Source of the DNA: Phyllobates terribilis
Taxonomy: Eukaryota
DNA: 64,000 nt
Direction: 5' to 3'
Assembly: GCF_046119375.1 (NCBI RefSeq)
Contig: NW_027362769.1
Location: 386,384,001-386,448,000 of the forward strand
Shown here piece by piece: positions 1,573 through 57,828 of this stretch (positions are counted from its first letter, which is position 1; each line of letters opens with the position of its first letter). The notes below the pieces were generated by a model, which was not told the DNA's origin, did no database searches, and worked only from the letters and a program-made list of their open reading frames with translations. The position numbers were made by a program, and so were the translations under genes.

Positions 1573-9271
<7,699 letters not shown>

Positions 9272-19120: not shown

Positions 19121-22100
19121 TCAGGTCCAGTCCTGCCCCCCATAGTCTGCATCGATGTCCCTCGTGCTGCTGCGGGGGTCTCGTCTGCTCCTCTCACAGT
19201 CTGTTGGTTTCATAGGAAATGTAAAAATCTCCATCTTTCAAAACCAAAAAAAGCGAGAAGCAGGTAAAAAAGTGTCACAATGACAGAAAATACAGAAAAA
19301 GTGTGGCTACATACCATGCCCATATAATACCGCCATATAGTGCTCAAGTACTAGCACCACCAGTGCACAACAGTATAACCATGCAGTGCACGATAGCAAC
19401 CATATACAGTGCCCATATAATATCACAACAGGGTGCCCAAGTACTAGCACCAGTGTACAATAGTATCTATATTCAAAGCCCATATAATACCGCCATATAG
19501 TGCCCAAGAACTAATACCATACAGTACAAAATAGTACCGATATACTACTACCATGTAATACCACCAAGTACTAGCACCATACTGTGCACCATAGTACCCA
19601 AATACAATGACCATATAATACCTCCATATAGTGCCCTAGTACTAGCACCATACAGTGCACCATAGTACCTATATACAGTGACCATTTCATGCCACTATAT
19701 AGTGCCCAAGAACTAGCACCATAGAGTACACAATTGTGCACATATACAGTGACTGTTATATAGCGCCTAACAGTCCACAAAAACTACACATAATACCGCC
19801 ATAAGGTAGTCAAGAACATCCCCCTCACTGTCCATATAATATTACCCTCACACAGTGACACAGTTCTTAGAGCACGGTATGGCGGTATTATTCAGGTAGT
19901 GGGACAGTTGTTAGAGCAGTGTATGGCGGTATTATTCAGGTAGTGGGACAGTTGTTAGAGCAGTGTATGGCGGTATTATTCAGGTAGCACAGGTGTTAGA
20001 GCAGTGTATGGCGGTATTATTCAGGTAGTAGCACAGTTGTTAGAGCAGTGTATGGCGGTATTATTCAGGTAGTAGCACAGGTGTTAGAGCAGTGTATGGC
20101 GGTATTATTCAGGTAGTAGCACAGGTGTTAGAGCAGTGTATGGCGGTATTATTCAGGTAGTAGCACAGGTGTTAGAGCAGTGTATGGCGGTATTATTCAG
20201 GTAGTAGCACAGATGTTAGAGCAGTGTATGGTGGTATTATTCAGGTAGTAGCACAAGTGTTAGAGCAGTGTATAGCGGTATTATTCATGTAGTAGCACAG
20301 GTGTTAGAGCAGTGTATGGCAGTATTATTCAGGTAGTAGCACAGTTGTTAGAGCAGTGTATGGCAGTATTATTCAGGTAGTAGCACAAGTGTTAGAGCAG
20401 TGTATAGCGGTATTATTCATGTAGTAGCACAGGTGTTAGAGCAGTGTATGGCGGTATTATTCGGTAGTAGCACAGGTGTTAGAGCAGTGTATGACGGTAT
20501 TATTCAGGTAGTAGCACAGATGTTAGAGCAGTGTATGGTGGTATTATTCAGGTAGTAGCACAAGTGTTAGAGCAGTATATAGCGGTATTATTCATGTAGT
20601 AGCACAGGTGTTAGAGCAGTGTATGGCGGTATTATTCAGGTAGTAGCACAGGTGTTAGAGCAGTGTATGGCGGGATTATTCAGGTAGTGGCACAGGTGTT
20701 AGAGCAGTGTATGGTGGTATTATTCAGGTAGTAGCACAGGTGTTAGAGCAGTGTATGGCGGTATTATTCAGGTAGTAGCACAGGTGTTAGAGCAGTGTAT
20801 GGCGGGATTATTCAGGTAGTGGCACAGGTGTTAGAGCAGTGTATGGCGGTATTATTCAGGTAGTAGCACAGGTGTTAGAGCAGTGTATGGCGGTATTATT
20901 CAGGTAGTAGCACAGGTGTTAGAGCAGTGTATGGCGGTATTATTCAGGTAGTGGGACAGTTGTTAGAGCAGTGTATGGCGGTATTATTCAGGTAGCACAG
21001 GTGTTAGAGCAGTGTATGGCAGTATTATTCAGGTAGTAGCACAGTTGTTAGAGCAGTGTATGGCGGTATTATTCAGGTAGTAGCACAGATGTTAGAGCAG
21101 TGTATGGTGGTATTATTCAGGTAGTAGCACAAGTGTTAGAGCAGTGTATAGCGGTATTATTCATGTAGTAGCACAGGTGTTAGAGCAGTGTATGGCGGGA
21201 TTATTCAGGTAGTGGCACAGGTGTTAGAGCAGTGTATGGCGGTATTATTCAGGTAGTAGCACAGGTGTTAGAGCAGTGTATGGTGGTATTATTCAGGTAG
21301 TAGCACAGGTGTTAGAGCAGTGTATGGCGGTATTATTCAGGTAGTAGCACAGGTTTTAGAGCAGTGTATGGCGGTATTATGTAGGTGCTACATGGTGTGA
21401 TTTCCCATCCCAGAGGAGGACACCTACTTTGTTCCTGCAGTCCCGTGGACACTTTCTGTGGCAGTCCCGTGGACACTTTCTGTGGCTGGTGGGTAGCGGG
21501 TTCTGACAGATTCCCCTTCGTGCCCTCGGTCTGGTCCTCGGAGGATTTGTGTGGGGGGTGAAGGACCCAGTTTGGTTGGGAGTACAGAGGCGTCTGCATG
21601 TTCTCGTAGGAATCTGCATCTGCTATTAAGAGAAATGGCCGTGGCTGGAGTAGCGGTGACACACCTGTATGGGGCGGTGATATTTACTGTGCGGGCGGAT
21701 GGTCTGATGGGGGGATGTGATTACACACGTCACATGATCTCTTCTCCTTTGGTCACAGAGTCTCCCCGGCTTCACGGGATCACATAGCCCCTGCTGACTC
21801 CTCCCCTTTTTTCTTTCTGACTCCGCCCATCAGCTGTTACCAGTGAGCAGTGCATTGTGGGAGCTGTCAGGACACTCTCAGGCACGCTGGGCTGTAATAC
21901 CACATGCCTGACAGCAGGTGGCGCTACACAGGGGACAGCAGCTCTCGCTGTGACTGGAGTGATGGCTTCTCACCTTCGTCTTGTGTCGTCCCCTCGTCTG
22001 CAGGACCCTCGGCCTTCGTCCGGACACAGATGGATCCTTTCATGTCTTCATACGACTGGGACCCTGAGACACGAGAAGAACAGAGATGAAGTGACCCCAT

Positions 22101-25100
22101 TCTTATATCACAGCATGGCCGCCCCAGCTCCACGGCACCCAGGTCCTGGGCCGCACCCTCTGAGCCATCTTTAATTTCTTCATTGGTGTTTTCATAGCAG
22201 TCGCCATCTAGAAAACAGAAGTGGGGGCGTCAGCCGCGTAACCGGCACCTCAGGGGGGCGACTAACGCCCGGACAAAACAAGGACTTCACCCCCCGTCCC
22301 CGTCCCATCGTTACATAACAGTACATTATAAAATTACACATTCATGTTTGTTTTACTATATTCTTTTTTTTATTATGTAAATATTTTATTACCCTAAACC
22401 TAAACCCGACACTAGTACTATCCCTCGTCAGACCTAATCCATGTCCCACACCAAAATCCTAATCCTAAATCGAGTCCTAAATGTAACCCCAGTCCTAGCC
22501 TTCATCAGAACCCTAAGTGTAGTACTAACACTAACCCTAGTCTAAAATCTAACCCTACTCCTAACACCGTAGTCAGAACCCTAGCCCCAGTCCTAATCCT
22601 AGTCCTAGCCCAAACCAAAGTCTTAATCCTAAACCTAGTCCTAACTTTAACCCTAGTCCTGGTCCTAACTCTAACTCTAGTCTTAATCCTAACCCTACTT
22701 CTAATGGTAGTCAGTACTATAATTCCAGTCCTAACGCTAACCCTAGTCCTAATCCAAGTTCTGAGGCCACGGCCCCACTATCAGTATTTGATCAGTATTC
22801 GGTCAGTATTTTTTCTCAGGAGTGGGAGCCAAAACCAGGTGAGGAACAATCAGAGAAAAGGTATAATAGAAACAAGTCACCAATTCTGCATTTATCACCC
22901 ACTCCTGGTTTTGGCTCCCACTCCTGAGAAAAAATACTGACCGAATACTGATCAAATACTGATAGTGGGGCCGTGACCTAATAAGAACCCTATTCCTAGT
23001 CCTAATACTAATACTATCCCCAGTCCTAACTCCACTCAAACCCTAACCCCAGTCCTAATCCTAGTCCTTGACCTAACCAAGTCCTAATCCTAAATCTAGT
23101 CCTAACTTTAACCCTACTTCTAACACTAACTATAGTCAGAACCCTAACCTCAGTCCTGACTCTAGCCCTAGTCCTAAATCTAACTCTAATCCTAACCCTA
23201 CTTCAAACACTAATAGTGGTCCGAACCCTAATCCCAGTCCTAGCATTAACCCCAGTCCTAACCCTATTCCTAGCCCTAGGGTTAAAAATACTATGTAAAA
23301 TTAGATTATTGTAAAATTAGGGATTTTGTATGGTTTTATTATTTTTTTTTAAGTATGGGACAGTTCACACATCAGGTCACCGTCTATTCTCTCACAAAAT
23401 TAAAAGTGAGAGTGGAGGTGGGGAGCTGCGAGAGAGCACGGTGCAGCCTCTATCATCTCATTGGCTGCCTATGCAGAGCGCAGCAGTCGGGATGAGTTTG
23501 TCATTGGTTGCTGAGCTCTGCATAGCAAAGCTCACCTCATTATACCGAGAGCTTTGTTATATATGTTACTGACAAAGCAGAGCGCAGAAACCAATGACAA
23601 ACTCATCTCAACTGCTGCGCTCTGCATAGGAACCTGCGGTGCAGAGGCCCTAACCTGGATGTCAGACCATCTCTGGCTGCCTTACTTATCTAGTTCACCT
23701 GGGGGTGGAGGGTAGCCAAAAAATGAAGAAGCCCTAAGGCAACCCTGTGCCCCCAGATATCCTGCCCATCGCTGAGGCCTTGTTACCTATGGAGTCCTCA
23801 GGGTCATCCGGGTCCTCGGTGGGGTCCTCATAGCAGCCGCTTGCTGGTGAGAGAGGGTATTACACGTGTATTTTTGAGGGGCCGAAAAATAGGAAGACAA
23901 ACGGAGGAAGGAGCAAAAATCATAAATGAAACTTTCTCACCATCAGACGCCTGATCCCCTCCTTCAGCCATCGGCTCCAAATAAGAATCACCGCCTGGAA
24001 ATGACACCGTAAAGCAATTAAAGGGGATGTCAGGGGTCCCGAACTTGTGCTGCTGCAGTGTATAGATCACGTGGGATTTTTTTCCAGTCACTGACAGGAA
24101 GCCGAGGTTTTCAAAATAGTTTGGGAATAAAATTGCGTTGGAAAGTTGCAGAACTTTTGCACCGTCCCTTTAATGCGGCTGGTTATTATAATGGTTATAA
24201 AGGTTCCTAACCGAACTCTGGAGATGAACAGAGAAATGTTTTTGAGACAAAGAAATTGGGGAAGCGTGACTCAAAAACAAGAGCAAAAAAGAGAAAAAAA
24301 TGTCATTTCCTCTTCTGTTCTGACTGTTCGGGGAGGACGGGGCTCAAATAAGTTCACTGATGAAATGCAAGTTACTGATACTGGGGGAGGGCGACACCGA
24401 GAAATGGAGGACAGGGGGCTTCAAGGTCTCGTAAATGACCCCAGACATGGAGACAACTGAGTGGACGGGTCCCATGGGCCGGAGACTGCGAGGAGCAGAA
24501 CAAAACTGGGGCCCGGTGTACGAGACACATGCTTCACTGTCATGATGGGGCAAGGAAGGGGCACAAAGAAGCCCCTCAGCCTTCCCACCAGGATATTACA
24601 TACAAAAACATGGCAGCAGACTCTTCTTCCCACCTGGGCCTCTGCCATTTGTCCACCATTCACCAAATATCTCATCAGTCATTCCTTCAATCTGGCTCCA
24701 CACTCAGCCCCATCAGAGACCCCCTATTCCTTGGCCCCCTTAGAACTAGACGATGAGGAGCAACCTGAGAATGAGGCATGTAAACATTCACTGCCCTGGA
24801 TCACCAGGGACTTTACCAATCACCCTCTAATGCTCTGCATTCACTGCCCCTGGACCTCCGGGGACTTTATCATTACCCAATCACCCCCCTGGACCGCCGG
24901 GGACTTTACCATTACCCAATCACCCCCCTGGACTCCCGGGGACTTTATCATTACCCAATCACTCCCCTGGACCCCCGGGGACTTTATCATTACCAGTTCA
25001 CTCCCCTGGACCCCAGAGACTTTATCATTACCCGTTCACTCCCCTGGACCCCAGGGACTTTATCATTACCCGTTCACTCCCCTGCACCCTCAGGGACTTT

Positions 25101-28100
25101 ATCATTACCTGTTCACTCCCTTGGACTCCCAGGGACTTTACCATTACCCGTTCACTCCCCTGGACCCCCAGGGACTTTACCGTTACCTATTAACTCCCCT
25201 GGACCCTCAGGGACTTTATCATTACCCGTTCACTCCCCTGGACCTTAGGGACTTTATCATTACCCGTTCACTCCCCTGGACCCTAGGGACTTTATCATTA
25301 CCCGTTCACTCCCCTGCGCCCTCAGGGACTTTACCATTACCCGTTCACTCCCCTGGACCCCAGGGACTTTATCATTACCCGTTCACTCCCCTGGACCCTA
25401 GGGACTTTATCATTACCCGTTCACTCCCCTGCGCCCTCAGGGACTTTACCATTACCCGTTCACTCCCCTGGACCCCAGGGACTTTATCATTACCCGTTCA
25501 CTCCCCTAGACCCCCAGGGATTTTACCATTACCTATTAACTCCCCTGGACCCTCAGAGACTTTATCATTACCCGTTCACTCCCCTGGACCGCAGGGACTT
25601 TATGGTTACCCGTTCACTCCCCTGGACCCCAGGGACTTTACCATTACCCGTTCACTCCCCTGGACCCCAGGGACTTTATCATTACCCGTTCACTCCCCTG
25701 GACCCCAGGGACTTTACCATTACCCATTCACTCCCATGGACCTCCAGGGACTTTATGGTTACCCGTTCACTCCCCTGGACCCCAGGGACTTTACCATTAC
25801 CCGTTCACTCCCCTGGACCCCCAGGACTTTACCATTACCCGTTCACTCCCCTGGACCCCCAGGACTTTACCATTACCCGTTCACTCCCCTGGACCCCCAG
25901 GTAATTTACCATTACCTATTAACTCCCCTGCACACTCAGGGACTTTATCATTACCCGTTCACTCCCCTGGACCCCCAGGGACTTTACCATTACCCGTTCA
26001 CCCCCCTGGGCCTTCAGTGACTTTATCATAATCCGTTCACTCCCCTGGACCCCCAGGTAATTTACCATTACCTATTAACTTCCCTGCACACTCAGGGACT
26101 TTATCATTACCCGTTCACTCCCCTGGACCCCCAGGGACTTTACCATTACCCGTTCACTCCCCTGGACCCCAGGGACTTTACTATTATCCGTTCACTCTCC
26201 TGGACCCCAGGGACTTTACCATTACCCGTTCACTCCCCTGGGCCTTCAGAGACTTTACCATTACCCGTTCACTCCCCTAGACCCCAGGGACTTTACCATT
26301 ACCCGTTCACTCCCATGGACCCCCAGGGACTTACCATTACCCATTCACTCCCATGGACCCCCAGGGAATTTACCATTACCCAATCACTGCCCTAGATCTC
26401 TAGAGATTTTACGCGTTACTATTTAGGCATTGTATGGCGGTGTTATAGAGATCCTGAATCAGTTTTTTTAGGGGCTTGAATGGCTGTGTTATTTGGGCAC
26501 CATGTGGCGGTATTATTGTTTGTGGTGTGAACAGTATTAAGGTATTAATATCTGTGTATAAGGTACGTATCTAATTCATATATATATACAGTGTGGGCCA
26601 TTTATATGGATACGCCTAAATTAAATGGGAATGGTTGGTGATATCAACTTCCTGTTTGTGGCACATAGGTATATGGGAGGGTGAAAACTTTTCCAGATGG
26701 GTGGTGACCATGGCGGCCATTTTGAAATCGGCTATTTTGGAAACCAACCTTATTTTTTTCAATGGGAAGAGGGTTATGTGACACATCAAACCTATTGAGA
26801 ATTTCATAAGAAAAACACTGGTGTGCTTAGTTTTAATGTAACTTTATTCTTTCATTAGTTTTTTACAAGTTTATGACCACTTATAAAATGTGTTCAAAGT
26901 GCTGCCCATTGTGTTGGATTGTCAATGCCGCCCTCTTCTCCCACTCTTGACACACTGATAGCAACACTGCAGAAGAGACGGTAGCACAGGCTTCCAGGAT
27001 CTGTTGTTTCAGATGCTGCACATCTCGTATCTTCACAGCATAGACAATTGCCTTCAGATGACCCCAAAGATAAAAGTCTAAGGGGGTCAGATCGGGAGAC
27101 CTTGGTGGCCATTCAACTGGCCCACGATGACCAATCCACTTTCCAGGAAACTGTTCATGTAGGAATGCTCGGACCTGACACCCATAATGTGGTGGTGCAC
27201 CATCTTGTTGGAAAAACTCAGGGAACGTGCCATCTTCAGTGCATAAAGAGGGCAACTCATCATCATGGAGCAATTTGAGATATCCAGTGGCACTGAGGTT
27301 TCCATTGATGAAGAATGGCCCCACTATCTTTGTACCCCATATACCACACCATACCATCAAGATACGAGATGTGCAGCATCTGAAACAGCGGATACTGGAA
27401 GCCTGTGCTGGCATTTCTTCTGCGGTGTTGCTATCAGTGTGTCAAGAGTGGGAGAAGAGGGCGGCATTGACAATCCAACACAATGGGCAGCACTTTGAAC
27501 ACATTTTATACGTGGTCATAAACTTGTAAAAAACTCATGAAAGAATAAAGTTACGCTAAAACCAAGCACACCATTGTTTTTCTTATGAAATTCTCAATAA
27601 GTTTGATGTGTCACATGACCCTCTTCCCATTGAAAAAAATAAGGTTGGTTTCCAAAATGGCCGATTTCAAAATGGCCGCCATGGTCACCACCCATCTGGA
27701 AAAGTTTTCCCCCTCCCATATACTAATGTGCCACAAACAGGAAGTTGATATCACCAACCATTCCCATTTAATTTAGGCGTATCCATATAAAGGGCCCACC
27801 CTGTATATTGGTATGATGAAAATGACCCAATAATGAGCAGTCCCTTGTTACTTGCTCCCAGAATTACATTTTCTATACAACCGCCATCTGGCTGCTTTCC
27901 GCGAGTTGTAATATCCATTTATGTAAAGTAGTCTGCTCAAAATAACTTGAGGCGGTCAATGTATAAAAGGCCTGAAGAACCGGACAGGAGGAAACCAGAG
28001 GTGAGACCTGAAGAAACGGAAAGGAAAAGACCAGAGGTGAGACCTGAAGAACCGGACAGGAGGAGACCAGAGGTGAGGCATGAAGGACTGGACAGGAGGA

Positions 28101-31100
28101 GACCAGAGGTGAGGCCTGAAGAACCGGACAGTAGGAGACCAGAGGTGAGACCTGAAGAACCGGACAGGAGGAGACCAGAGATGAGACCTGAAGAACCGGA
28201 CAGGAGGAGACCAGAGGTGAGACCTGAAGAACCGGACAGGAGGAGACCAGAGGTGAGACCTGAAGAACCGGACAGGAGGAGACCAGAGGTGAGACCTGAA
28301 GAACTGGACAGGAAGAGACCAGAGGTGAGGCATGAAGAATTAGACAGGAGGAGACCAGAGGTGAGGCATGAAGAATTAGACAGGAGGAGACCAGAGGTGA
28401 GGCATGAAGAATTAGACAGGAGGAGACCAGAGGTGAGGCATGAAGAATTAGACAGGAGGAGACCAGAGGTGAGACCTGAAGAACCGGACAGGAGGAGACC
28501 AGAGGTGAGGCCTGAAGGACCGGACAGGAGGAGACCAGAGGTGAGGCTTGAAGAACCGGACAGGAGGAGACCAGAGGTGAGGCCTGAAGGACCGGACAGG
28601 AGAAGACCAGAGGTGAGGCCTGAAGAACCGGACAGGAGAAGACCAGAGGTGAGGCATGAAGAATTAGACAGGAGGAGACCAGAGGTGAGGCCTGAAGGAC
28701 CGGACAGGAGGGGAGACCAGAGGTGAGGCCTGAAGGACCGGACAGGAGGAGACCAGAGGTGAGGCCTGAAGAACCGGACAGGAGGAGACCAGAGGTGAGA
28801 CCTGAAGAACCGGACAGGAGGAGACCAGAGGTGAGACCTGAAGAACCGGACAGGAGGAGACCAGAGGTGAGACCTGAAGAACCGGACAGGAGGAGACCAG
28901 AGGTGAGACCTGAAGAACCGGACAGGAGGAGACCAGAGGTGAGACCTGAAGAACTGGACAGGAAGAGACCAGAGGTGAGGCATGAAGAATTAGACAGGAG
29001 GAGACCAGAGGTGAGGCATGAAGAATTAGACAGGAGGAGACCAGAGGTGAGGCATGAAGAATTAGACAGGAGGAGACCAGAGGTGAGGCATGAAGAATTA
29101 GACAGGAGGAGACCAGAGGTGAGACCTGAAGAACCGGACAGGAGGAGACCAGAGGTGAGGCCTGAAGGACCGGACAGGAGGAGACCAGAGGTGAGGCTTG
29201 AAGAACCGGACAGGAGGAGACCAGAGGTGAGGCCTGAAGGACCGGACAGGAGAAGACCAGAGGTGAGGCCTGAAGAACCGGACAGGAGAAGACCAGAGGT
29301 GAGGCATGAAGAATTAGACAGGAGGAGACCAGAGGTGAGGCCTGAAGGACCGGACAGGAGGAGACCAGAGGTGAGGCCTGAAGGACCGGACAGGAGGAGA
29401 CCAGAGGTGAGGCCTGAAGAACCGGACAGGAGGAGACCAGAGGTGAGACCTGAAGAACCGGACAGGTGGAAACCAGAGGTGAGGCTTGAAGAATTGGACA
29501 GGAGGAGACCAGAGGTGAGGCCTGAAGAGGCAGCGGTGCTCTGTAGAGCTCCCAGTAACCCATTCCCTGCTTCTCAGGGGTTAGAGCGCCACCTGGGATC
29601 TCTGACATATAATGAGACCGCGCCGCACTCACCCAGAGACAGGAAGGAGCCCTTGTCCGAGTAATAATCATCACCAACGACTTTAGATGGAGACACGTTC
29701 TGGTAGGTGAAGTCCTGATCCTTGTGGGCAACATCTGATCGGTGGAGGCACAAAGAATAAAAAGATTATTGATGTCATCATCACGAGAAAAAAAGGATGG
29801 GAAATAAAAATAGGGAAAATAAGAAAAAAGAAAAATAGGAGAAAAAGAAGATGGGAAATAAAAAAAAGGAAAAATGTGAGGAAGGAAAAGAGGAAGATGG
29901 AAATAAAAAAAGGAAAATATGAAGAAAGATAAAAAGGAGAATAAGAAATCGGTAAGTAAGGAAAGTACAAGGAAAAGACGATAGGAAATTTAAAAAAAAG
30001 GTAAAATATGAAGAAGGAAAAAAGGAGAAAAAGAAGACGAAAAGTAAAATGAAAATATACAAATATGGGGAAAAAAAAGGAAAGAAAGAAGACAGGAAAT
30101 TTAAAAAAAAATGGAAAATCCGAAAAAGAAGAAACAAAGAAAAATAAGATTGGAAATAAAAAAGGAAAGTATGAAGAAGAAAAAAATTAGAAAAGGAAGA
30201 CAAGAAATAAGAAAAGGAGAATACAAAGAAGGAAAAATAGGAGAAAAACAAAACGAGAAAAAAAAGGGAAATTCAAAGAAAAGAAGACAGAAAATGATAA
30301 AAAAAAGGGAAATATGTAGAAGGAAAAAAGGAAGAGAAGGAGGAGGGATTAGGAGGAGACGCGGGGTCTCCCGCACGTGGTGGTACCTGTCTCGGGGCTG
30401 ATGGATTCTGTGTAGAGATTCCTGGCGGCTGAGCTCATCTTGAAGAAACTGATAAGGAGAGAACGTTATATAAACCCGAGGACATTACAGAGAGAGGAGG
30501 ACATGGCCCATAGATGGCGCCGTACCAGGGCACAATTCGATGCCGCCTCCCCTGTGTCCGGTGCGCCTCACCGCTGCCGTCCCTGACCCCACACCTTGAT
30601 AGAAGCTCAGTATTTCTATCAAAAGGGAAAATGGAGTTTTCCCGCACAGATCTCTCCTGAGGCGACACGCGGGCACAGGATGGCGGACGTAGCGGCACAG
30701 CTGATAGACGCAGGGTCCTGTCTGTGGCGGCGGCACTCACCTGCTCTTGGCGCGTCTCCTCACTCTCCTTCCTGTAATGAGACATGGAGTATAACGGTCA
30801 CTCAGCTTCCTCGGGTTGTGAGTGATAAATCTGACTCTTTGTGAATCGCCACCATTATTGCGCCACTAAGCACATTTGTCATTTAGGGGCCCAGGAGAGT
30901 GGAGGGACAACTTTTATGGGAAATATGGCAGCCATTTTCGTTGTCACAAAAGCAAATCATTAATAATTCTGAATATAATCTCTTAGACGCTGTTCACACC
31001 GAGTTTTTGTTAAAGTAAAAAATCCATTTCGAAATCACTTGGAAAACTCTTATTATTCATTTCTATGGGAAATGGGAAATCCCTTTTGCCATTCAAATGA

Positions 31101-34100
31101 GGAATTTTTGAGTTTTGGTTTTTCTTTTACCCGAAGAGGTGCTGAAAAAAAAAACGGATGTTAAAATAAAAAAGTGCAGGTCATTTCTTGGAAGTGGAAT
31201 CTGATGGAATCCGCTCCAAACTGGGCATTGTCCAATTAAAAGGCTGCAAAAAAAAGGAAAACAAAATACTCCGGAAATGAAAAATTGCTCCAAAAATTCC
31301 ACACAAAAAAAAAAACGATTAAAAAAACGTATAATTTTTGAACACTTCAAAAATCTTCCGTGTGAACATAGCCTTAGAATGCTCTACAACAGTGATCACA
31401 TATCATCCGACACAGAAGAAAATGCACCGATACACTGTAGCAAACCCTATACTTATGCAAGCAAGACACGATCGAGATTGGTTTCGAAGCCCTTACAGTT
31501 ATATGAAAAAGTTTGTGCACCCCTATTAATCTTAAGCTTAATGTTTTATAAAAATTGGTGTTTTTGCAGCAGCTATTTCAGTTTGATATATGTAATAACT
31601 GTTGGACACAGTAATGTTTCTGCCTTGAAATGAGGTTTATTGTACTAACAGAAAATGTGCAATCTGCATTCAAACAAAATTTGACAGGTGCATAAGTATG
31701 GGCACCCGTATCATTTTCTTGTTTTAAATACTCCTACCTACTTTTTACTGACTTACTAAAGCACTTTTTTTTTGTTTTGTAACCTCATTGAGCCTTGAAC
31801 TTCATAGCCTGGTGTATACAATCATGAGAAAAGCTACTTAAAGTGGCCACTTGCAAGTTGTTCTCCTGTTTGAATCTCCTCTGAAGAGTGGCATCATGGG
31901 CTCCTCAAAACAACTGTCAAATGATCTGAAAACAAAGATTATTCAACATAGTTGTTCAGGGGAAGGATACAAAAAGCTGTCTCAGCGATTTAACCTGTCA
32001 GTTTACACTGTGAGGAACATAGTAAGGAAATGGAAGACCACGGGGACAGTTCTTGTTAAGGCCAGAAGTGGCAGGCCAAGAAAAACATCAGAAAGGCAGA
32101 GAAGAAGAATGGTGAGATCAGTCAAGGACAATCCTCAGACCACCTCCAGAGAGCTGCAGCATCAACTTGCTGCAGATGGTGTCACTGTGCATCGGTCAAC
32201 TATACAACGCACTTTGCACAAGGAGAAGCTGTATGGGAGAGTGATGCGAAAGAAGACGTTTCTGCAAGCACGCCACAAACAGAGTCGGCTGAGGTATGCA
32301 AAAGCACATTTGGAGAAGCCAATTTCTTTTTGGAAGAAGGTCCTGTGGACTGATGAAACCAAGATTGAGTTGTTTGGTCATACAAAAAGGCGTTATGCAT
32401 GGCGGCAAAAAAACACAGCATTCCAAGAAAAACACTTGCTACCCACAGTAAAATTTGGTGGAGGTTCCATCATGCTTTGGGGCTGTGTGGCCAATGCCGG
32501 CACCGGGAATCTTGTTAAAGTTGAGGGACACATGGATTCCACTCAGTATCAGCAGATTCTTGACAATAATGTTCAAGAATCAGTGACAAAGTTGAAGTTA
32601 CGCAGGGGATGGATCTTTCAGCAAGACAATGATCCAAAACACCGCTCCAAATCTACTCAGGCATTCATGCAGAGGAACAATTACAATGTTCTGGAATGGC
32701 CATCCCAGTCCCCAGACCTGAATATCATTGAACATCTGTGGGATCATTTGAAGAGGGCTGTCCATGCTCGGCGACCATCAAACTTAACTGAACTGGAATT
32801 GTTTTGTAAAGAGTAATGGTCAAAAATACCTTCATCCAAGATCCAGGAACTCATTAAAAGCTACAGGAAGCGACTAGAGGCCGTTATTTTTGCAAAAGGA
32901 GGATCTACTAAATATTAATGTCACCTTTCTGGTGAGGTGCCCATACTTATGCACCTGTCAAATTTTGTTTGAATGCAGATTGCACATTTTCTGTTTGTAC
33001 AATAAACCTCATTTCAAGGCAGAAACATTACTGTGTCCAACAGTTATTACATATATCAAACTGAAATAGCTGTTGCAAAAACACCAATTTTTATAAAACA
33101 TTAAGCTTAAGATTAATAGGGGTGCCCAAACTTTTTCATATAACTGTAAGCGCAGACACTGTTTCCGTTCACTGATGGCCAGCAGAGATGTTGAAAATGG
33201 GGAAGAATTGAAGCACAAAGCCGACTAGAAAGTTACAGAACTTTTGTGAATATTTTTGGCTGTGGGGTCTTGATAAAATAAAGTGACACGCACTGCGTTT
33301 TATGCTTACGAAGCCGCCCACGAGCAGCAGGCAGAGCAGCGCTGAGGACAACGCCACCACCACGATGATCCAGTATCGCCCCTCCAGGAACAGCTGCCAT
33401 CCTGCCAGGAGGAAACAAGGCACTAGTCAGCGAGCTTCTGGGCTCTCTACTGTCGTATTCCATAAGTATGGTTTATGACAGTCATCAAGTGAGGCCAGGA
33501 AGCGGAGCCGGTCGGCCCCCATGGCCAGCCCTGTACCACACAGCAGCCCCATCCTTCCAGTTCTCTCACCTGTCGCGTTGCCGTGCGGAGGCGACCACTG
33601 ACATGTAGCGTTTAACACCTTTATCGTTCTGTTATTATGGCAGCAGGCACCCCCAGAATCCTTATTAATGATGGAGGTGATGATGAATGATGGCCCCTGC
33701 CTCATCACCTTGACGTTTAGCTGAGCCCTCGCTCTGTGCGCCATCGCAATCACCTCATTACCTCTGGACCACTGCATCTTGGTCCAGTTCATCGGGGCAC
33801 GGCAGGTGATCCACTCCTTCACCACATCATTCAGTTCTGTGGGGAAGAAAGAAGAGTTGTGGGGAGGACTAAGTGCCGGGGCTGAGAATCAGAGACATCA
33901 GCGATGGAAGAAAGAAGAGTTGTGGGGAGGAATAAGTGCCGGGACCAGGAATCTGTGACATCAGCGATGGAAGAAAGAAGAGTTTTGGAGAGGACTAAGT
34001 GCCTGGACCGGAAATCAGAGATTTCACCAATGGAAGAAAGAAGAGTTGTGGGAAGAACTAAATGTCGGGGGCCAGGACATCAGAGACATCAGTGATGGAA

Positions 34101-37100
34101 GAAAGAAGAGTTGTGGGGAGGAATAAGTGCTGGGGTCGGGAATCAGTGACATCAGCGATGGAAGAAAGAAAAGTTGTGGGGAGGAATAAGTGCTGGGGTC
34201 GGGAATCAGAGACATCAGCGATGGAAGAAAGAAGAGTTGTAGAGAGGATTAAGTGCTGGGGCCTGAAATCAGAGACATCAGCGATGGAAGAAAGAAGAGT
34301 TGTGGAGAGGAATAAGTGCTGGGGTCGGGAATCAGTGACATCAGCGATGGAAGAAAGAAGAGTTGTGGGGAGGAATAATTGCTGGGGCCAGAAATCAGAG
34401 ACATCAGCGATGGAAGAAAGAAGAGTTGTGGGGAGGACTAAATGTCGGGGCCGGTAATCAGTGACATCAGCGATGGAAGAAAGAAGAGTTGTGAGGACGA
34501 TTAAGTGCCGGGACCGGAAATCAGATATCAGCTTTGGAAGAAAGATGTGTTGTGGGGAGGACTAAGTGCCAGGACCGGGAATCAGAAACATCAGCGATGG
34601 AAGAAAGAAGAGTTGTGGGGAGGACTAAGTGCCGGGGCCTGGAATCAGTGACATCAGCGATTACATCACCGAAGAGGCAACCTGTTGTCATCACTAGGCA
34701 ACAATGTCTAAGACAAGGGGAAAGGCCCCCAGTTCTTATGGACCATAGCAATGTCCCCCGCTCCCACTACCCCCAACAACTTAAACAATAAGACTTTCCT
34801 CCATCACTCTAACCAAAGGCCCCCACATACAGAGGGACTCAAAACACAGAGATATTGGCAGGAGCATCCCACCGGCTGTTGTGTATAGGGTCCCCCGACA
34901 CTCCTCCAACAGGCGATGTCAGGGGCAAGGAGGACCAGGTCGAAGATTTCAACACCCGGTCATTTTGTTGTCATGGAGGATTAGCCCCTGTCAGAGAAGT
35001 CTCCAGGGGACAGAGGAGAATGGAAAGGACAGAGAAGTCTGAAGGGTACAGAGGAAAATGTTGTGAACAGAGGAGTCTTGGGGGACAGAGAAATCTGTAG
35101 GGAATAGAAGCAAATGGAGGGAACAGAGTAGTCTCGAGGGGACAGAGGAAAATGGAGTGAATGGAGGAGTTTAATGGGAACAGAGGAGTCTAATGGGAAC
35201 AGAGGAAAATGTAGGGAGCAGAAGTAAATGGAGAGGACAGAGGACACCGCCGTCCGGTCACTTTTTGCTTTACCAGAATTTGGGGAGGTGAAAATCATGG
35301 ATTATAGATCTGTAACCTCCCAACCTAAAAAGAACTCCACGCGTCGAAAAGACGGACAAAACTATGATTTTAATGTCAAAGTGCGCGCCCATAGTCCGGG
35401 TGACAACCAATAAAGCGCTAATACGGTAATGCGCTCGCAGATGTCACACAGCTTTTCCCGACTCCCGAGTGACAGATCTGCATATGATTTTATGGCGGCT
35501 GTCCATTCACGATAATGGATCAGAGCTGCAATACCAGACAAAACCTGAGGACACTGGTGGCGCTGTTTCTGGAAAAAAAGTAGATGTTTTATTGGAAAGC
35601 AAACACTTTAAGAGGTCGTAGTTGGTGCTGGGTTCGCTCCCGATGGCGGTCACGGGGATTGCTACCATCTGGAGTCCTACCTGATAGGTGAGCATCATCC
35701 ACGGAGCAGGAGTAATTGCCGGACGTGTTGTCAGGAGCGAGCTGTAGAGTCAAGTTGTTGGTATCTAACATCAGAATGATGGGAGTCATCGCCACCACCA
35801 CCCACGAGTGGTTGCTGTGCTCCTCCATCTTCAGCTTCAGCACCAGCGGGACGGGATCGGAGGAGCGATGTCTGCAGGGCAGAGAGGTGGAACCTGACAG
35901 AGATGGGAAAAGATCGCTCAGAGGCTTCGGTAATAACTGCACAATTACACACCGATAATTCCGACAAGAACTTGTACTTGCAGCTTCGGATGTGAGCGGA
36001 GGATAAAAAATAATGGAACTCGAGATATGTACAAGCAAAGCAAAAACACGTCCATTATACGACGCCATATTCTGTGTGGGGACTTATTCATAAACGTATT
36101 TCTTACATTTTAAATAGGGAAACCATCAGCAAGTTGGATATTGAATTTAGGTTCTTATTCCAGCTGTGACCTGTAGAAAGTCCCAGAAGAGCCCAGCTCG
36201 TGTTAAAGGGTCGGGGACAACACACTTATCTCTGGGGGACCCCCAGCAATCTGGAGAATGGGGCTCGGGGTCCTGCATGATCGACCTCCGCTCCATTCAT
36301 GGGGCTGCTGGAAGTAGCGGAGCAATGCTATAGAAGGGCCTCCAGGATCCAGGGCCCCATTTTCCGGATCGCTGGGGGTCTGCATGTAGCCCCCCCCCCC
36401 ATACTATCTATATTGGATAACCTTTTATTAATGGCATATCCCTTTGAGATACAAGTAGACAAATCTTCTGACTACCATCCCAGCACAGGACACTTATGTG
36501 TAAGGTCCACATGATTCTGCCCGGACTATCAGCTCATCAGATCCACATCCATTCTGTCAGCAACAGATCCGTCAGCACCAGCTTGCTGATGGTTTCCACT
36601 TTTTCCAACATTACACAAAGTAAAACAAAGTTATAGAAAACCAGGAGGCAAATGAAGATGTTACGACAAGAAGAACATTTTTTTTTAATGCTAATAAAAA
36701 ACTTATCACATAAAAAAATATGACCTTAGCCAGGTCACCCCAAAATACCAGGATAGGGATCATGGTAGGGATCGTTAGAAAAGTGATGTCAGTAATAGTT
36801 CTAGATTATGGAGAGTAGGGATCATCCCAGCATATCATAGAGAGAGAGAGACAGGATAGGGATCATGGTAGGGATCGGTAGGAAGGTGATCTAATAGTTT
36901 TTATTTTGGAGAGTAGGGATCAATACAGAATAACAAACTGAGCATAACGGCATAGGGATCACCGGAGGGGTCACTAGGCAGGTTCCACATTATGGAGAGT
37001 AGGGATCATCACAGATTACCACAGAGAACATGATAAGATAAGGATTGTTAATCAGATGATGCCAGGAATAGTTTTAGGTTATAGAGAGTAGGGATCATCA

Positions 37101-40062
37101 CAGAATAAAAGCATGACAAGGTAAGAATTACTACAGGGACCATTAGACAGCTGGGTACAGAGAGTAGGGACCATTAGACAGCTGAGTACAGAGAGTAGGG
37201 ACCATTAGACAGCAGAAGTCACTGAGTACAGAGAGTATGGGTCATTAGACAGCTGAGTACAGAAAGTAGGGACCATTAGACAGCTGAGTACAGAGAGTAG
37301 GGGCCATTAGACAGCTGAGTACAGAGAGTGGGGACCATCAGACAGTTTAAGTCACTGAGTACAGAGAGTAGGGATCATTAAACAGCTGAGTACAGATAGT
37401 AGGGATCATTAGACAGCTGAAGTCACTGAGTACAGAGAGTAGGGATCATTAGACAGCTGAGTACAGAAAGTAGGGACCAATAGACAGCTGAAGTCACTGA
37501 GTACAGAGAGAAGGGATCATATACACCTGAGTATAGAGAGTAGGGACCATTAGACAGCTGAGTACAGAGAGTAGGGATCATTAGACAGCTGAGTACAGAG
37601 AGTAGGGATCATTAGACAGCTGAAGTCACCGAGTACAGAGAGTAGGGGTCATTAGACAGCTGAGTACAGAAAGTAGGGACAATTAGACAGCTGAGTACAG
37701 AGAGTAGGGGCCATTAGACAGCTGAGTACAGAGAGTAGGGACCATTAGACAGCAGAAGTCACTGAGTACAGAGAGTATGGGTCATTAGACAGCTGAGTAC
37801 AGAAAGTAGGGACCATTAGACAGCTGAGTACAGAGAGTAGGGGCCATTAGACAGCTGAGTACAGAGAGTGGGGACCATCAGACAGTTTAAGTCACTGAGT
37901 ACAGAGAGTAGGGATCATTAAACAGCTGAGTACAGATAGTAGGGATCATTAGACAGCTGAAGTCACTGAGTACAGAGAGTAGGGATCATTAGACAGCTGA
38001 GTACAGAAAGTAGGGACCATTAGACAGCTGAAGTCACTGAGTACAGAGAGAAGGGATCATATACACCTGAGTATAGAGAGTAGGGACCATTAGACAGCTG
38101 AGTACAGAGAGTAGGGATCATTAGACAGCTGAAGTCACCGAGTACAGAGAGTAGGGGTCATTAGACAGCTGAGTACAGAAAGTAGGGACAATTAGACAGC
38201 TGAGTACAGAGAGTAGGGGCCATTAGACAGCTGAGTACAGAGAGTAGGGACCATTAGACAGCTAAAGTCACTGAGTACAGAGAGTAGGGATCATCCCAGC
38301 ATACCATAGAAAGCAAGACAGGATAGGAATCGTTGTAGGGATCGGTAAGGTGATGTAATAGTTTTTTAGTTTGGAGAGTAGGGATCATTACAGAATGCCA
38401 CACTTAGCATGACAGCATATGGATCATTAGAGGGATCACTAGGTAGATGATGACAGTAAGAGTTCTAGATTATGCAGAGTAGGGATCATCCCAGCATACC
38501 ATAGAAAGCAAGATAGGATATCTTTGTGGGGATCAGTAAGAACTTAGGTGATGTAATATTATTTTTTATTTTGGAGAGTAGGGATCGTCACAGAATAAAA
38601 GCATGCCAATGTAAGAATTACTACATGGATCATTAGACAACTGCAAAAAAATAGAGTAGGGACCATCCCAGCATACTATAGAAAGCAAGACAGGATAGGG
38701 ATCGTTGTAGGGATCGGTAAGAAGGTGATGTAATAGTTTTTTTTTTTATTTGTAATAGTCTTTTTTTTTATTTTTGGAGAGTAGGGATCATCACAGTAAA
38801 AACAGATCTTTAAAATAACAAGAAAGTGAATAATATATTCTGTACACAGAATAGGGATCATAGGGTGGACAGATAAAAAGGATCCAGATTTTGTAGGAAG
38901 AGTAGGGATCACTGTAGGAAATACATCACATAGGGTTTTATAGAAACTAACAGTCTGGAAAGAGCTGGAATCATAGAGTAGATAGAAAAAAGGGATCATG
39001 ATAAAGTGGGAAGAGTAGGGAACGCTGTAGGGAATACATCACAGGTTTATCTCTGCATATTTCTACAGCTTATCAAAGTGTAGGAAGAGTAGGGATCATC
39101 GCAGCACTCGAAGTGCACAGAATGGATCATTTTAGAATACAGAACAAAAAGAGAATAATAATTTTGAAATTCTTATAGAAAGTAGGGATCATCATAGGTT
39201 ACAGAAAGGGAAGGGATCATCATCACGGAGAGATCTTCATAGGTTACAGAAAGAGAAGGGATCATCATCACATGGGGACAGTAGGGATCATCATAGGTTA
39301 CAAAAAGGGAAGGGATTATCATCACGTAGGGACAGTAGGGATCATCATTGGTTACAGAAAGAGAAGGGATCATTATGTAGGGACAGTAGGGATCATCATA
39401 GGTTACAGAAAGAGAAGGGATCATGATCATGTAGGGGCAGTAGGGATCATCAAAGGTTAAAAAAACTGATGGGATCATCATCATGTAGGGACAGTAGGGA
39501 TCATCATAGGTTACAGAAAGGGATGAGATCATCATCACGTAGGGACAGTAGGGTCATCATAGGGCCCACATCACATAGGCATATTACATGTAGACGAAAT
39601 GAGAGGGCATCATATTTTATAGGCCAGGGATCCTATTAGTGTGGGAGAGTAGGGATCATCATTGCGGAGTGGGGAAGGATCATTGTGGAATACAGATAAG
39701 GAATTATTGTGGGTTACCCACACAGTTATTATGGGGACATAGGGATTATGACAATGTAACTAGAGTAGGGATTATTATATTATTATTAGAGTAGGGATCG
39801 TCATAGATTGTTGAATATAAGACCATGATTGGATCTATAGGACACAGGAAAGTTTTTTCTAGAATATCGAGGGCTGATTAATATAAAATGGAAAATAGTG
39901 AAAACCATAGTAGGGATGATGAAGGTGTAGGAAGAGTAGGGATCATCACTGACAGATTGGGGCACATTTCTTACCTTCTGCAGTTACCGGGATAATCCTG
40001 CTGTAATCTGGATTTTTGGCTGAGCAGGTGATCCCCAGGTAGAGGACAAGGAGAAGCAGCAT
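19121..40062 (-). CDS. cd19: CD19 B-lymphocyte co-receptor orthologue (diverged), ~464 aa model
   Basis: Exons (minus strand) 40062-39975 (gccaccATG, signal peptide [15 protein letters not shown]), 35893-35681 (GSTSLPC...SGNYSC, Ig-like), 33836-33570 (WITC...W...[12 protein letters not shown], Ig-like), 33401-33294 ([25 protein letters not shown]), 30771-30741 ([10 protein letters not shown]), 30448-30387 (FFK..RNLY), 29734-29633 (YQNV), 23994-23941 (YLEP), 23843-23787 (YEDP), 22207-22157 (YENT), 22063-21974 ([10 protein letters not shown]), 21619-21428 (DADSYENMQ), 19200-19121 (..YGGQDWT*). All phases are compatible. GSQSYEDM and DADSYENM match the human CD19 tail, and the gene is head-to-head with rabep2 as in human. 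Confidence 0.88.
19300..19860. repeat. Degenerate repeat cluster (ataataccgccata / gtactagcacca motifs)
   Basis: Recurrent motifs that are the reverse complement of the adjacent 44-bp array. Confidence 0.7.
19866..21377. repeat. 44-bp minisatellite, ~34 copies
   Basis: gttagagcagtgtatggcggtattattcaggtagtagcacaggt repeated. Confidence 0.95.
22400..23290 (-). repeat. Degenerate telomere-like (CCCTAA/CCCTAG/TCCTAA) tract
   Basis: Hexamer-based C-rich repeats such as ctaaccctagtcctaatcctag; interrupted by a MITE. Confidence 0.75.
22764..22980. mobile_element. PIF/Harbinger-like palindromic MITE
   Basis: ggccacggccccactatcagtatttgatcagtattcggtcag ... ctgaccgaatactgatcaaatactgatagtggggccgtgacc; long, near-perfect inverted arms. 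Confidence 0.75.
23428..23632. mobile_element. Palindromic MITE-like element
   Basis: ctatgcagagcgcagcagt..gatgagtttgtcattggtt versus aaccaatgacaaactcatc..actgctgcgctctgcatag. Confidence 0.55.
24790..26390. repeat. 38-39-bp minisatellite
   Basis: gggactttatcattacccgttcactcccctggacccca repeated; source of the spurious 519-aa ORF. Confidence 0.95.
26589..27803. mobile_element. Tc1/mariner-superfamily deletion derivative with ~445-bp inverted arms
   Basis: TA-flanked; arms 26589-27032 and 27359-27803 are reverse complements; centre retains transposase remnant [10 protein letters not shown]...[17 protein letters not shown] on the minus strand. Confidence 0.88.
27960..29525. repeat. 33-bp minisatellite with a 650-bp higher-order duplication
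   Basis: ccagaggtgagacctgaagaaccggacaggaggaga repeated; identical variant blocks at 28291 and 28941. Confidence 0.95.
29780..30350. repeat. A/G-rich low-complexity tract
   Basis: Poly-purine aaag/gaaa runs. Confidence 0.85.
30983..31377. mobile_element. Harbinger-like MITE
   Basis: Inverted ends ttagacgctgttcacaccg / cgtgtgaacatagccttag. Confidence 0.55.
31496..33146 (+). mobile_element. Full-length Tc1 (DD34E) transposon with ~210-bp TIRs and TA target duplication
   Basis: TA|cagttatatgaaaaagttt... and ...aaactttttcatataactg|TA; inverted repeats ~31496-31707 and ~32938-33146 are nearly identical. Confidence 0.95.
31896..32918 (+). pseudogene. Tc1 transposase, 340-codon frame with a single premature stop (TAA at 32814-32816)
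   Basis: MGSSKQLS...GRPRK...WTDETK...FQQDNDPKH...[15 protein letters not shown]...CKE*WSKIP...KGGSTKY*. The frame continues past the stop to the canonical C-terminus. Confidence 0.92.
33838..34665. repeat. 63-bp minisatellite, ~13 copies, abutting a cd19 acceptor
   Basis: agcgatggaagaaagaagagttgtggggagga..aagtgc...aatcag.gacatc repeated. Confidence 0.92.
34990..35245. repeat. Degenerate ~30-bp purine-rich repeat
   Basis: Recurrent gggacagaggaaaatg / acagaggagt motifs. Confidence 0.65.
36203..36431. mobile_element. T2/Kolobok-like MITE remnant
   Basis: Starts TTAAaggg, has an internal inverted segment and ends ggataacctttt..ttaa. Confidence 0.5.
36740..39950. repeat. gagtagggatcat-based satellite with a homogeneous 31/41-bp core (37130-38290) and 540-bp higher-order repeat
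   Basis: gagtacagagagtagggaccattagacagct units; identical blocks start at 37201 and 37741. Confidence 0.9.
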
Positions 40063-49880: not shown

Positions 49881-50239
49881 ATACATGATAAGGTTCTGCA
49901 TTAACCCTGTGTGTCCCAGGTTGGAGCTGGTTTCTGTAGAGTTTAGAGAAGACTGTTCGCTGGGCTGGGGGCAGTGGGGTGTGGAGGGTCTTCCTCTCGC
50001 CCGTCGGTCACACCCAGCTGCATCCTGTTTGTCGATCTCACACAGGGAGGATGTGGACTTTTCTTGTCGGTTATTGTAGGAAACACCATAAAACAGACCG
50101 TGCACGAAGCCATATATATATATATAATGACAGTACCATTATATCAGCACTGTACTAATAGTACAGAGAGATAAGCGGCACTGGATTTATCTGGCAGCTG
50201 CTTATCTCCATAAATAAAAGGGTGAGCCTTGCAAAAATG

Positions 50240-51960: not shown

Positions 51961-52535
51961 TCACAAGCAGGCTCCTTTTTTATGTCTTTATTTTTCTATA
52001 TATTTTTTTTTTTTTTGTCTTTGCTGTAGTTTTGCACTAATTTCTTAAAGAAAAAAAAAAAATGCGCATGGGGTTCATGAAAATCCAAAAACAAATGTAT
52101 TTTTAGGATTTTTTGGGAGAAGAGGACACTTGTGCAAAAATTCTGCCACTTTTTAAAAAAAAAAAAAAAAAGTATAAAAATAATGAATCGGCCGCAAATA
52201 TATGAAAAATCAGAACCGCAGCCAAAATGGCGAATAAGGAAGAAAACGGGCGAACAAGTATAAAAACAGGAAACCTAAAATGCCATGATGGGTCGGGCCC
52301 AGAGCTGTCACACGTGATAACTGGAGCCTGGGTGAGCTAGATGTTGGCGTTCAGTCATGACGTGTCGTCAGCGCTGCAGCCAGTCATGGTCGGCAGTGGT
52401 CACGTGACCTCCCGGCTGGATACAGTGGAGCAGAGGCACGCGGCCGGCCTCTCCATTACCCTTGATATTTGGTTTCCGTTCCCATTACTCTGTCCTATTA
52501 TCCAATCTCATTCTCCAGGAAACCTCTGTGTGTCG

Positions 52536-55045
52536 ATGTCAGAGTCAGAAGATGGCAGCTTTGGGCAGGACCCCCTCACGTCCTCTCTTGAGGGCCCCTG
52601 TGATGACCACGAGCTCCTGGCCACGACCGAGGCCTTTGCACGAGGCTTCGATTGCGTCTCCATTTCCTCTTTTCCGGGGGAGAGGCTGATCCAGGGCCAG
52701 GAGGACACGGCCTCCATTATCTCTACAGCCACCCTGGTCCCCGAGTGCATTTACATCCCTCCGGCGGGCTACCAGCTGCTGTCCGAGCAGGAGGTAACGG
52801 GGGCCAGGCTTCTGCCAGCCCCTCTGGTTCATTGTGTCTCTGGGTAGAAAAAAAAAAAAAGCTCATCTAAAATAAAAATATGAATCTATGCAAAAATCCT
52901 ATATAGATCTGTTTCCATAGCAACAGACTACAAACAAGCCCTGCGTAGTCAGATAGTGCCGCCACATTCCCACCCATGCGTGCCCTCCTTCACTACTTTC
53001 TTTAGCAAGACTTATGATTATATTTTTTGGATGGAAGTCATGTGACTGATCAGACTACACATGGCTTGTTTGTAGTCTGTTACTAAGGCAACACATCTGT
53101 ATACAGCTTCTCTACAGCCCTACATCCTTCCCTGGCAACAGACTACGAGCAAACCCTGCGTAGTTGGATCCTGCAGTCCAAAAAAAACTGGGCAAGAAGG
53201 AAGGAACGTGACAGGTCAGACTACACAGGACTTGTTTGTAGTCTGTTACCAAGGAAACGCATAGATCTGTATGGAATCTGTATAAAGATCTGTGTTGCCT
53301 TAGTAACAGACTACAAACAAGCCCTGTGTAGTCACATTTCTTCCTTAGTATTTTGGAAAGACGTATGACTGCAGGATCTGACTACAGTGTTTGCTCGTAG
53401 TCTGTTACCATGGAGACGTATAGGAGCTGTATGCAGAAAGACAATAGTTTGTGATGTTTCTATAAGTTGCTTCACTTTACAGATGCGTTAAGGCAATAAA
53501 TACAAGAGGCGTGTGGAGTGGTAGTGATCATGGGGGGCACCAGTAGTAACATTTCTGTGTTTTGGGGCAGTGGGTGCAGCAGAGAGCGGCACTGCAGAGC
53601 ACCGCGGAGCGGCTGGAGAAGGTGACGCAGGAGAAGGAGGCGCTGCAGGACGCCCTGAGGTGCAGCTCGGAGGACTGTGCTAACCAGGCAAGTCATTGTA
53701 TAGATGTATGGCGCATGTATATGTGTCACAGTATGGACTCATCGGCTGCCCGGTCTCCTGCAGGTGAAGCAGTTACTGGAGCAGATAAAGAGCTCCGAGG
53801 AAATCCTGCAAGGTCTGCAGAAAACCCTGTCTGACACCCAGCAGAAGACCTCACAGAAAATGGTGAGATCCGCTCCAGGCTGTGGACGTTTTATACCTCA
53901 CTCTGACCGCTCTGGTCTCCTCCTCGCCTAACCTGATGCTTTACGCTAGCTGCCTGGCATTGAGCCGACCATCCGGATCGGAGCATTTCTAGGTTTCAAT
54001 GTCCGATAATCAGGATCTATTCTGATAATTGAGCAGTGGAACAACAGGGATCACCACTAATGTCCCCTCCTTGCATCCTGGTTTATGCTTTTTATTTTTC
54101 TTCTGTGTTTTCCATCCAGGCCGCCCTGACGGCCTCCTTCAGCCGCATGTGTCAGGAGGTGAACTGTCTGGATGATGAGAACGAGAAGCTGAGGACACTA
54201 AGTGTAGAAGCACCCCCTGCTGGGCAGAACGCGCAGCTCTCATCCCCGCAGGTATTACAGTGTGCACAGCGTCAGTCAGCAGCTGCTAAAGCCTGCGAGA
54301 TATAAGGTCCAGGCACAGACTCTCCTGGCGTAAATATGGCGCCACGGGTGCCCTAAACTACACTGATTGGGCGTATTACTCAGTGTTTTTGTAGTATCTT
54401 ATGCTGTTGTTTTCCAGAGAGCGGCGCAGCACAGACAGGAGCGGTTGTGTATAGAGATCGTCTCTCTGCAAGAGGAGCTGAAAGCTGAACAAGTGGCAAA
54501 GCAAGAGGTGGAGGAGCAGCTGAGGAGGGCAGCGGACACCCACACCGAGGAGAGGGGTGAATGGGCTCAGTCTGTGGGGTGGGCACCCGTCTATCCCTGT
54601 AGGCCGCACATGGACTGACCAGTCACTGCCCATATTGGATGTCGCCGTGATGCCCAGATCAGCTCTGCCAGTGACTGGGGTTGTTTTTTCCCTGGTGCTC
54701 CCAACCCCCCGGATGCCCCATACATGCTGACAAACCCAATTTTGTTAGGACATTGCCACAACCGTCCCACGGCCATGTGCGTTTTGGTGGCTTTCCATGG
54801 CATTTTGGGAACCATCCTGGAGTGGGGCTTAAATGACCCAAATTTTGCCCCAGTCATAATAGAAAATGGTAAAATAAATAAAATGGATCCTGCCTCCCCA
54901 GAAGTCGTTTTTTGTGGCCTCATGGAGTTAAATATTTACCCAAAAATGTATTAAATAAATAAATAAAATCCGGCATTAAGTAAAATAATTAGATCCGTCG
55001 CTCGAGCCACCCCGAAATCTTATGACTAGTTTTAGTCCAAATGTA

Positions 55046-55076
<31 letters not shown>

Positions 55077-57358: not shown

Positions 57359-57828
57359 GTCACGGGACTGCGGAGACTATGGGATGAGGCCGCACGCTGT
57401 ATACCGTGTATATAGGGTGCAATATATGCTCTAATAACCGTGTCCTGCCACCAGGGTGCGCATTCTCTAATATTAATGATCCGCCTGTGGGAAAACTGGA
57501 ATGAAACCCATAGAGAGCGGAGGATTATGTGACTACTAACGACCACTAACTGCTGTTACACTTTATTAAAGGCTCTTTTATATCACATGTGTCTGTAATG
57601 CATAAATCAAACACTGTAACATCCCTTTAAGCTGCAGGTTTCTTGTGACTATTGAAATGTAATTTTTATTTTTATTTTTTTCTGTGTGAATCTCCACCAC
57701 AATGCTTTCCTCAGGGAAAATGTATCAACTGTAACACGGTCAAAAGTCGCTCAAAGGTTTCAACTACAGGAAAACATCAAGGTCTTGGCACCTGGCGTGT
57801 ATTGGTAGTGGTGTAGCTCAGACACTTA

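Follow-up and report, generated by a model that had tools for sequence, protein, structure and literature searches.

The Annotated CD19 Gene of Phyllobates terribilis and Its Relationship to Other Tetrapod CD19 Genes

A 2022 paper reports that amphibians have CD19, whereas fishes lack it, and places the origin of the gene in amphibians (PMC9141580); it also describes CD21 as seemingly missing in Xenopus. According to a single-cell RNA sequencing (scRNA-seq) paper, CD19 “began to emerge in mouse” (PMC10770119), a statement that reflects the orthologue tables of that paper and not an absence of the gene. Our literature searches found no functional work on amphibian CD19. Here, we describe a 64,000-nucleotide (nt) stretch of the genome of the golden poison frog, Phyllobates terribilis (contig NW_027362769.1, positions 386,384,001 to 386,448,000, forward strand; hereafter, the window), in which a 20.9 kb locus of 13 exons on the minus strand is almost certainly the single-copy CD19 gene of this species, annotated by NCBI as “B-lymphocyte antigen CD19”. 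CD19 of P. terribilis was therefore already known, and the assignment is a correct reading of the locus, not a discovery.

Gene Model and Sequence Evidence for CD19

Thirteen coding exons, with lengths of 31–267 nt, run along the minus strand from 40062 to either 19194 or 19121, the two alternative ends of the gene. In the DNA reading, a hydrophobic leader comes after the ATG at 40062, and beyond it lie two immunoglobulin (Ig)-like exons of phase 1-1, a transmembrane (TM) exon and a series of small acidic tail exons. AG/GT borders flank every exon, and all 12 introns are GT-AG. The exons are as follows:

39975..40062, minus strand: exon 1, 88 nt; start codon at 40062, signal peptide and mature N-terminus; donor GTAAGA
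35681..35893, minus strand: exon 2, 213 nt, phase 1-1, first Ig-like exon; sub-threshold Pfam ig/Ig_3 matches, E 0.004–0.007
33570..33836, minus strand: exon 3, 267 nt, phase 1-1, second Ig-like exon; internal GT donor at 33762 in predicted isoform X4
33294..33401, minus strand: exon 4, stalk, TM helix and onset of the basic stop-transfer (…VSIKR); helix at residues 199–243 in the AlphaFold2 (AF2) model
30741..30771, minus strand: exon 5, 31-nt polybasic micro-exon
30387..30448, minus strand: exon 6, conserved FFK juxtamembrane box
29633..29734, minus strand: exon 7, YQNV (Y267)
23941..23994, minus strand: exon 8, SYLEP (Y295), aligned with the mammalian AYEEP motif
23787..23843, minus strand: exon 9, CYEDP (Y313)
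22157..22207, minus strand: exon 10, CYENT (Y332), absent from predicted isoform X3
21974..22063, minus strand: exon 11, first YxxM motif, SYEDM (Y349)
21428..21622, minus strand: exon 12, second YxxM motif, DADSYENM (Y380)
19194..19234, minus strand: exon 13 in the form used by predicted isoform X2, conserved anuran C-terminus and stop
19121..19200, minus strand: exon 13 from the alternative acceptor, predicted isoforms X1, X3 and X4, non-conserved C-terminus …DWT and stop

A codon-by-codon walk across the 13 intervals yielded exactly the 452-residue database protein (isoform X2), with canonical splice sites throughout, and the same walk with 19200–19121 as the last exon yielded exactly the 465-residue isoform X1. 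The walk was made in a script against the database proteins, which were also the sequences used in full-length searches and folding. The initial annotation, made from the DNA letters and their open reading frames (ORFs), had described 13 phase-compatible exons encoding a signal peptide, two Ig-like exons, a TM segment and a polybasic segment, and the exact protein match and canonical junctions confirm this description. A motif scan likewise found the six tail tyrosine motifs that it had listed, YQNV, YLEP, YEDP, YENT, YEDM and YENM, on the minus strand and in that order. The 12-residue polybasic stretch is genuine and is divided between exon 4 and micro-exon 5 (30771–30741), which was located by a phase-constrained scan together with a homologue. 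A different candidate for this exon, in the vicinity of 31145, was rejected because its phases were incompatible.

The other predicted isoforms depart from X2 at individual exons. X1 uses the acceptor at 19200, 34 nt beyond that of X2, and ends at 19121. X3 skips exon 10 and with it the YENT motif. In X4, splicing from the GT at 33762 within the second Ig exon deletes 64 residues, among them the second cysteine of the Ig domain, and this form seems either minor or spurious. The C-terminus of X2 carries a motif, GDFYxSYExNxL, that is present in 15 of the 18 aligned amphibian proteins and missing from the X. tropicalis model, two aligned caecilian sequences and the amniotes, whereas the C-terminus of X1 is not conserved across the aligned sequences. 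Because of this difference in conservation, and because the acceptor at 19234 has a better pyrimidine tract than that at 19200, X2, with its last exon at 19234–19194, is likely to be the main product. The span of 40062–19121 that was originally proposed thus corresponds to isoform X1, while the main coding sequence (CDS) probably ends at 19194.

The identity of the gene was assessed without reliance on its database name. The encoded protein has a type I layout, with a leader after the ATG, two Ig-like exons with cysteine pairs, a TM helix and a long tail. A profile built from 18 amphibian sequences scored the CD19 proteins of turtle, lizard and gerbil at 128–163 bits (E 1e-31 to 2e-42), while the best non-CD19 protein in that search, LRIG2, reached 45 bits. 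In a BLASTP comparison with CD19 of the gerbil Meriones unguiculatus (E 5e-14; ≈27% identity across 304 aligned residues), the alignment was collinear through the TM segment, the FFK box and the tail tyrosine motifs, including DADSYENM; SYLEP was aligned to gerbil AYEEP, and CYEDP and CYENT to YEDP and YENA. The contexts of the two YxxM motifs, GSQSYEDM (Y349) and DADSYENM (Y380), are invariant between frog and mammal. In a set of 31 tetrapod sequences from amphibians, reptiles and a mammal, Y267, Y332-E-N, S346, Y349-E, M352, D376, D378 and the S and Y380-E-N-M that follow were invariant, and Y295 and P298 of SYLEP were conserved in at least 90%. The P. terribilis protein is 76–78% identical to other dendrobatid proteins by BLASTP, and the sequences form a graded series from frogs through caecilians and reptiles to the mammal. 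Indirect support comes from spliced mRNAs of the orthologue in other frogs, seen as intronless Logan contigs from public runs (SRR5149407 and SRR13447504) with complete ORFs. The profile search that had been suggested as a check placed amniote CD19 far above every other Ig-superfamily protein and, together with the conserved YxxM contexts and the gene neighbourhood described below, agrees with the proposed orthology.

Alternative Readings, Gene Neighbourhood and Repeats

We considered the possibility that the locus encodes a different Ig-superfamily signaling receptor that shares only YxxM and YxN motifs with CD19, and that the name in NCBI was assigned automatically and in error. The Ig similarity of the ectodomain is generic: when the profile was searched against the PDB, human CD19 came third, after LRIG1 and titin. 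The frog ectodomain is also ≈100 residues shorter than that of mammals, and the downstream neighbours are unlike those of the human locus. These points count against identification as CD19, as do several others. Exon-wise Pfam searches gave only the sub-threshold Ig matches of exon 2, with no match for exon 3 or the tail; exon-wise phmmer against the PDB did not find CD19; and the second Ig ORF, used as the query of a word search, had no match within the length window of that search, which excludes full-length relatives. The ectodomain alone, as a sequence, thus fails to discriminate CD19 from other Ig proteins, and the expectation that it would be too diverged for easy detection was correct, these exon-wise searches being nearly blind. 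Binding of SH2 domains by the frog tail motifs, finally, is a property that we infer by analogy with mammalian CD19.

Structure prediction was another of the checks that had been proposed. The AF2 model of the ectodomain was β-rich, with a predicted local distance difference test (pLDDT) score of 80 and a predicted template modeling (pTM) score of 0.77. In an unbiased comparison, human CD19 chains 7urv_C and 7jic_A ranked first of 48,161 PDB chains for both the full-length and the ectodomain-only models, but with Z-scores of only 5.0–5.2. Three of the four matches covered 107–117 residues at a root-mean-square deviation (rmsd) of 3.6–3.8 Å, while for the remaining one, the ectodomain model against 7jic_A, the rmsd was 12.9 Å over 124 residues. 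The match to human CD19 at Z ≈ 5 (VIA) was statistically tied with unrelated rows, and Foldseek searches of the PDB with both models returned nothing significant. The predicted fold is thus weakly supportive of CD19 at best.

The initial annotation had noted that human CD19 lies head-to-head with RABEP2. In the window, rabaptin-like exons are likewise found on the plus strand, divergent from CD19 on the minus strand:

52341..57400, plus strand: rabaptin (RABEP2-like) coding exons, from the ORF reading, transcribed away from CD19

An exon within 56792–57127 encodes a Rab5-binding domain (PF09311, 44.4 bits versus a cutoff of 33.6), although Pfam cannot separate RABEP2 from RABEP1. Only this flank agrees with the human neighbourhood, the other being occupied by tectonic and protein phosphatase 1 (PP1) genes, which is a further point against CD19.

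The other-receptor explanation is nevertheless very improbable. At least 80 bits separate amniote CD19 from the best non-CD19 protein, and the alignment is not a matter of isolated motifs, but runs collinearly over the TM segment, the FFK box and the six tail motifs. Furthermore, both the adjacency and the orientation of RABEP2 are conserved, human CD19 ranks first, if only weakly, among the structural matches, and the similarity is graded from frogs through caecilians and reptiles to a mammal.

It is equally hard to credit that the locus is an intact-looking, yet silent or decaying gene copy that has been invaded by repeats. Its introns are indeed full of satellites and hold a possibly active transposase, in keeping with the original description of small exons scattered among satellites and transposons:

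19859–21380: satellite, 44 bp × 35, CD19 intron
24840–26393: satellite, 39 bp × 40, CD19 intron
27968–29528: satellite, 36 bp × 43, CD19 intron
33843–34661: satellite, 63 bp × 13, CD19 intron
37135–38263 and 39181–39563: further arrays, CD19 introns
31851..32816, plus strand: Tc1/mariner (Sleeping Beauty-like) transposase ORF, 321 residues, stop-free, CD19 intron 4

The intron 4 transposase matches the Pfam families Sleeping Beauty HTH, HTH_Tnp_Tc3_2 and DDE_3, and near-identical inverted flanks near 31277–31633 and 33009–33218 mark the ends of the element, which may be a recently active copy. Two of the predicted isoforms could also be taken as signs of decay, X4 losing most of the second Ig domain and X3 skipping the YENT exon. 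However, within CD19, the repeats are confined to introns, the 452-codon frame is fully open with GT-AG borders at 12 of 12 introns, all residues that are invariant across the 31 tetrapod sequences are retained, and the protein has kept the high identity to its dendrobatid relatives noted above.

Repeats also fill much of the DNA upstream of CD19. A second Tc1-like transposase remnant lies upstream of CD19, ≈0.5 kb from the start codon, at 40551–42260 (plus strand), and its 3′ part has expanded to a tandem array of 71 bp × 9 (41604–42248). Satellites at 42552–45829 (40 bp × 85) and 46494–49898 (57 bp × 60) account for the greater part of the 12 kb that separates the CD19 start from the first recognizable rabaptin exon. 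No N-terminal rabaptin exons were recognized in the interval from the CD19 start to 52.3 kb. The stretch at 50100–52500 (plus strand) is GC-rich and CpG-rich, with an observed/expected CpG ratio of 0.7–0.9 at 51.0–52.5 kb, and contains low-complexity repeats; it may hold the promoter and first exon of RABEP2. Downstream of rabaptin, at 62047–62505 (plus strand), is a 153-residue ORF with a P-loop (GHGKSSLINS) and a weak GTPase match in Pfam (MMR_HSR1, E 0.006). On the other side, downstream of CD19 and on the same strand, lies a tectonic-family gene (Pfam DUF1619_N and TCTN_DUF1619; 17582–17764, minus strand), and past it, on the opposite strand, a gene for a PP1 catalytic subunit (Metallophos and STPPase_N; 7700–9270, plus strand).

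Existing Annotation

Window positions 9121–50062 correspond to JBJBSG010000009.1:386393121–386434062 of GCA_046119375.1, with 0 mismatches. The gene called on JBJBSG010000009.1 has a span of 20,942 nt, identical to 19121–40062 of the window, and its RefSeq products are “B-lymphocyte antigen CD19” isoforms X1–X4 (XP_073504739.1 to XP_073504742.1). The P. terribilis CD19 proteins in the database match the window exons at 100%.

The name is widespread among amphibians. An exhaustive phmmer search with the 89-residue second Ig exon found a 452-residue “B-lymphocyte antigen CD19” of Anomaloglossus baeobatrachus (66% identity) and a 445-residue “uncharacterized protein” of Mixophyes fleayi. A search with the A. 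baeobatrachus protein then returned ≈20 amphibian proteins named CD19. The name is found in Dendrobates, Ranitomeya, Hyla, Engystomops, Dendropsophus and Eleutherodactylus, in Ascaphus, Discoglossus, Bombina, Lithobates, Mantella, Spea and Pyxicephalus, and in three caecilians, and there are two records for Xenopus tropicalis (XP_002941751.3 and XP_031749122.1).

Two species have clear CD19 orthologues that RefSeq labels “uncharacterized protein”: Bufo gargarizans (XP_044160908.1/XP_044160907.1) and Mixophyes fleayi (XP_075035172.1/XP_075035171.1). These proteins are 47–64% identical to the Phyllobates protein and have every tail motif, and the entries could be renamed CD19.

The initial annotation had supposed that the gene was hidden and could be missed or fragmented by automated pipelines, and had made its novelty conditional on the lack of an anuran annotation. 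This idea of a previously unannotated amphibian CD19 draws on the blindness of the exon-level searches, the placement of exons of 31–267 nt amid satellites and a Tc1 element, the annotated yet unnamed orthologues of B. gargarizans and M. fleayi, and the scRNA-seq statement on mouse (PMC10770119), but it is refuted by the CD19 call with four isoforms on the exact span in this assembly, by the ≈20 amphibian genomes that carry the name, including that of X. tropicalis, and by the presence of amphibian CD19 in the 2022 literature (PMC9141580). Neither the supposed omission nor the novelty could be upheld. The amphibian CD19 gene model is a useful candidate B-cell marker, but one that is already in the public annotation for many frogs.

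Predicted Function and Comparison with Other CD19 Proteins

From the biology of mammalian CD19, a working mode can be outlined by analogy for the frog protein. It would be a type I membrane protein that displays a short ectodomain, encoded by two Ig exons, on B cells beside the antigen receptor. Once the receptor is engaged, phosphorylation of the tail tyrosines by Src-family kinases would follow. SYEDM and SYENM, the two invariant YxxM sites, would in turn bring in the SH2 domains of the p85 subunit of PI3K, while SYLEP, a Y-x-x-P site equivalent to the mammalian YEEP, would recruit Vav, and the YxN sites (YQNV, YENT and YENM) are candidate docks of the Grb2 type. The combined effect would be a lower threshold for B-cell activation.

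The closest known counterpart of the gene described here is the RefSeq CD19 of P. terribilis itself (XP_073504739.1–XP_073504742.1), which is the same locus, with identical DNA, the same CDS span and residue-for-residue identical proteins. Mammalian CD19 (Meriones unguiculatus; human, 7JIC and 7URV) shares with the frog protein the type I topology, a TM segment with a flanking W, the basic stop-transfer, the FFK box and an identically ordered set of tail tyrosines, including that of DADSYENM. There are considerable differences, especially in the ectodomain, which in the frog comprises ≈180 residues from two exons compared to ≈266 in the gerbil, and lacks a middle segment. The frog tail is shorter and lacks an extra YEND-type site found in mammals, and the frog gene ends with an exon, encoding GDFYxSYExNxL, that mammalian CD19 does not have. 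The genes downstream of the frog locus also differ from those at the human CD19 locus.

The CD19 proteins of X. tropicalis, caecilians and turtle, all of which carry that name, have tail motifs and a TM segment like those of Phyllobates. Unlike the Phyllobates protein, they contain a further Ig domain in the middle, ≈100 residues long and with a Cys…Trp…Cys pattern of its own as well as Pfam Ig matches. This domain is absent from Phyllobates and from the other non-pipid frogs aligned, and in the gerbil the corresponding position is taken up by a long segment that lacks the Ig pattern. Since Xenopus, caecilians and turtles carry the middle domain that non-pipid frogs lack, the alignment suggests that the ancestral CD19 had three Ig domains. 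Tentatively, and with somewhat less than even confidence, we propose that non-pipid frogs have a trimmed CD19, in which the middle Ig domain was lost and a terminal micro-exon encoding a di-tyrosine C-terminus was gained. If this is true, it would imply lineage-specific changes in how the outside of the co-receptor is coupled to the inside. The difference between the two-Ig-exon CD19 of most frogs and the three-Ig form matters for the raising of antibodies and for structural comparison of the co-receptor.

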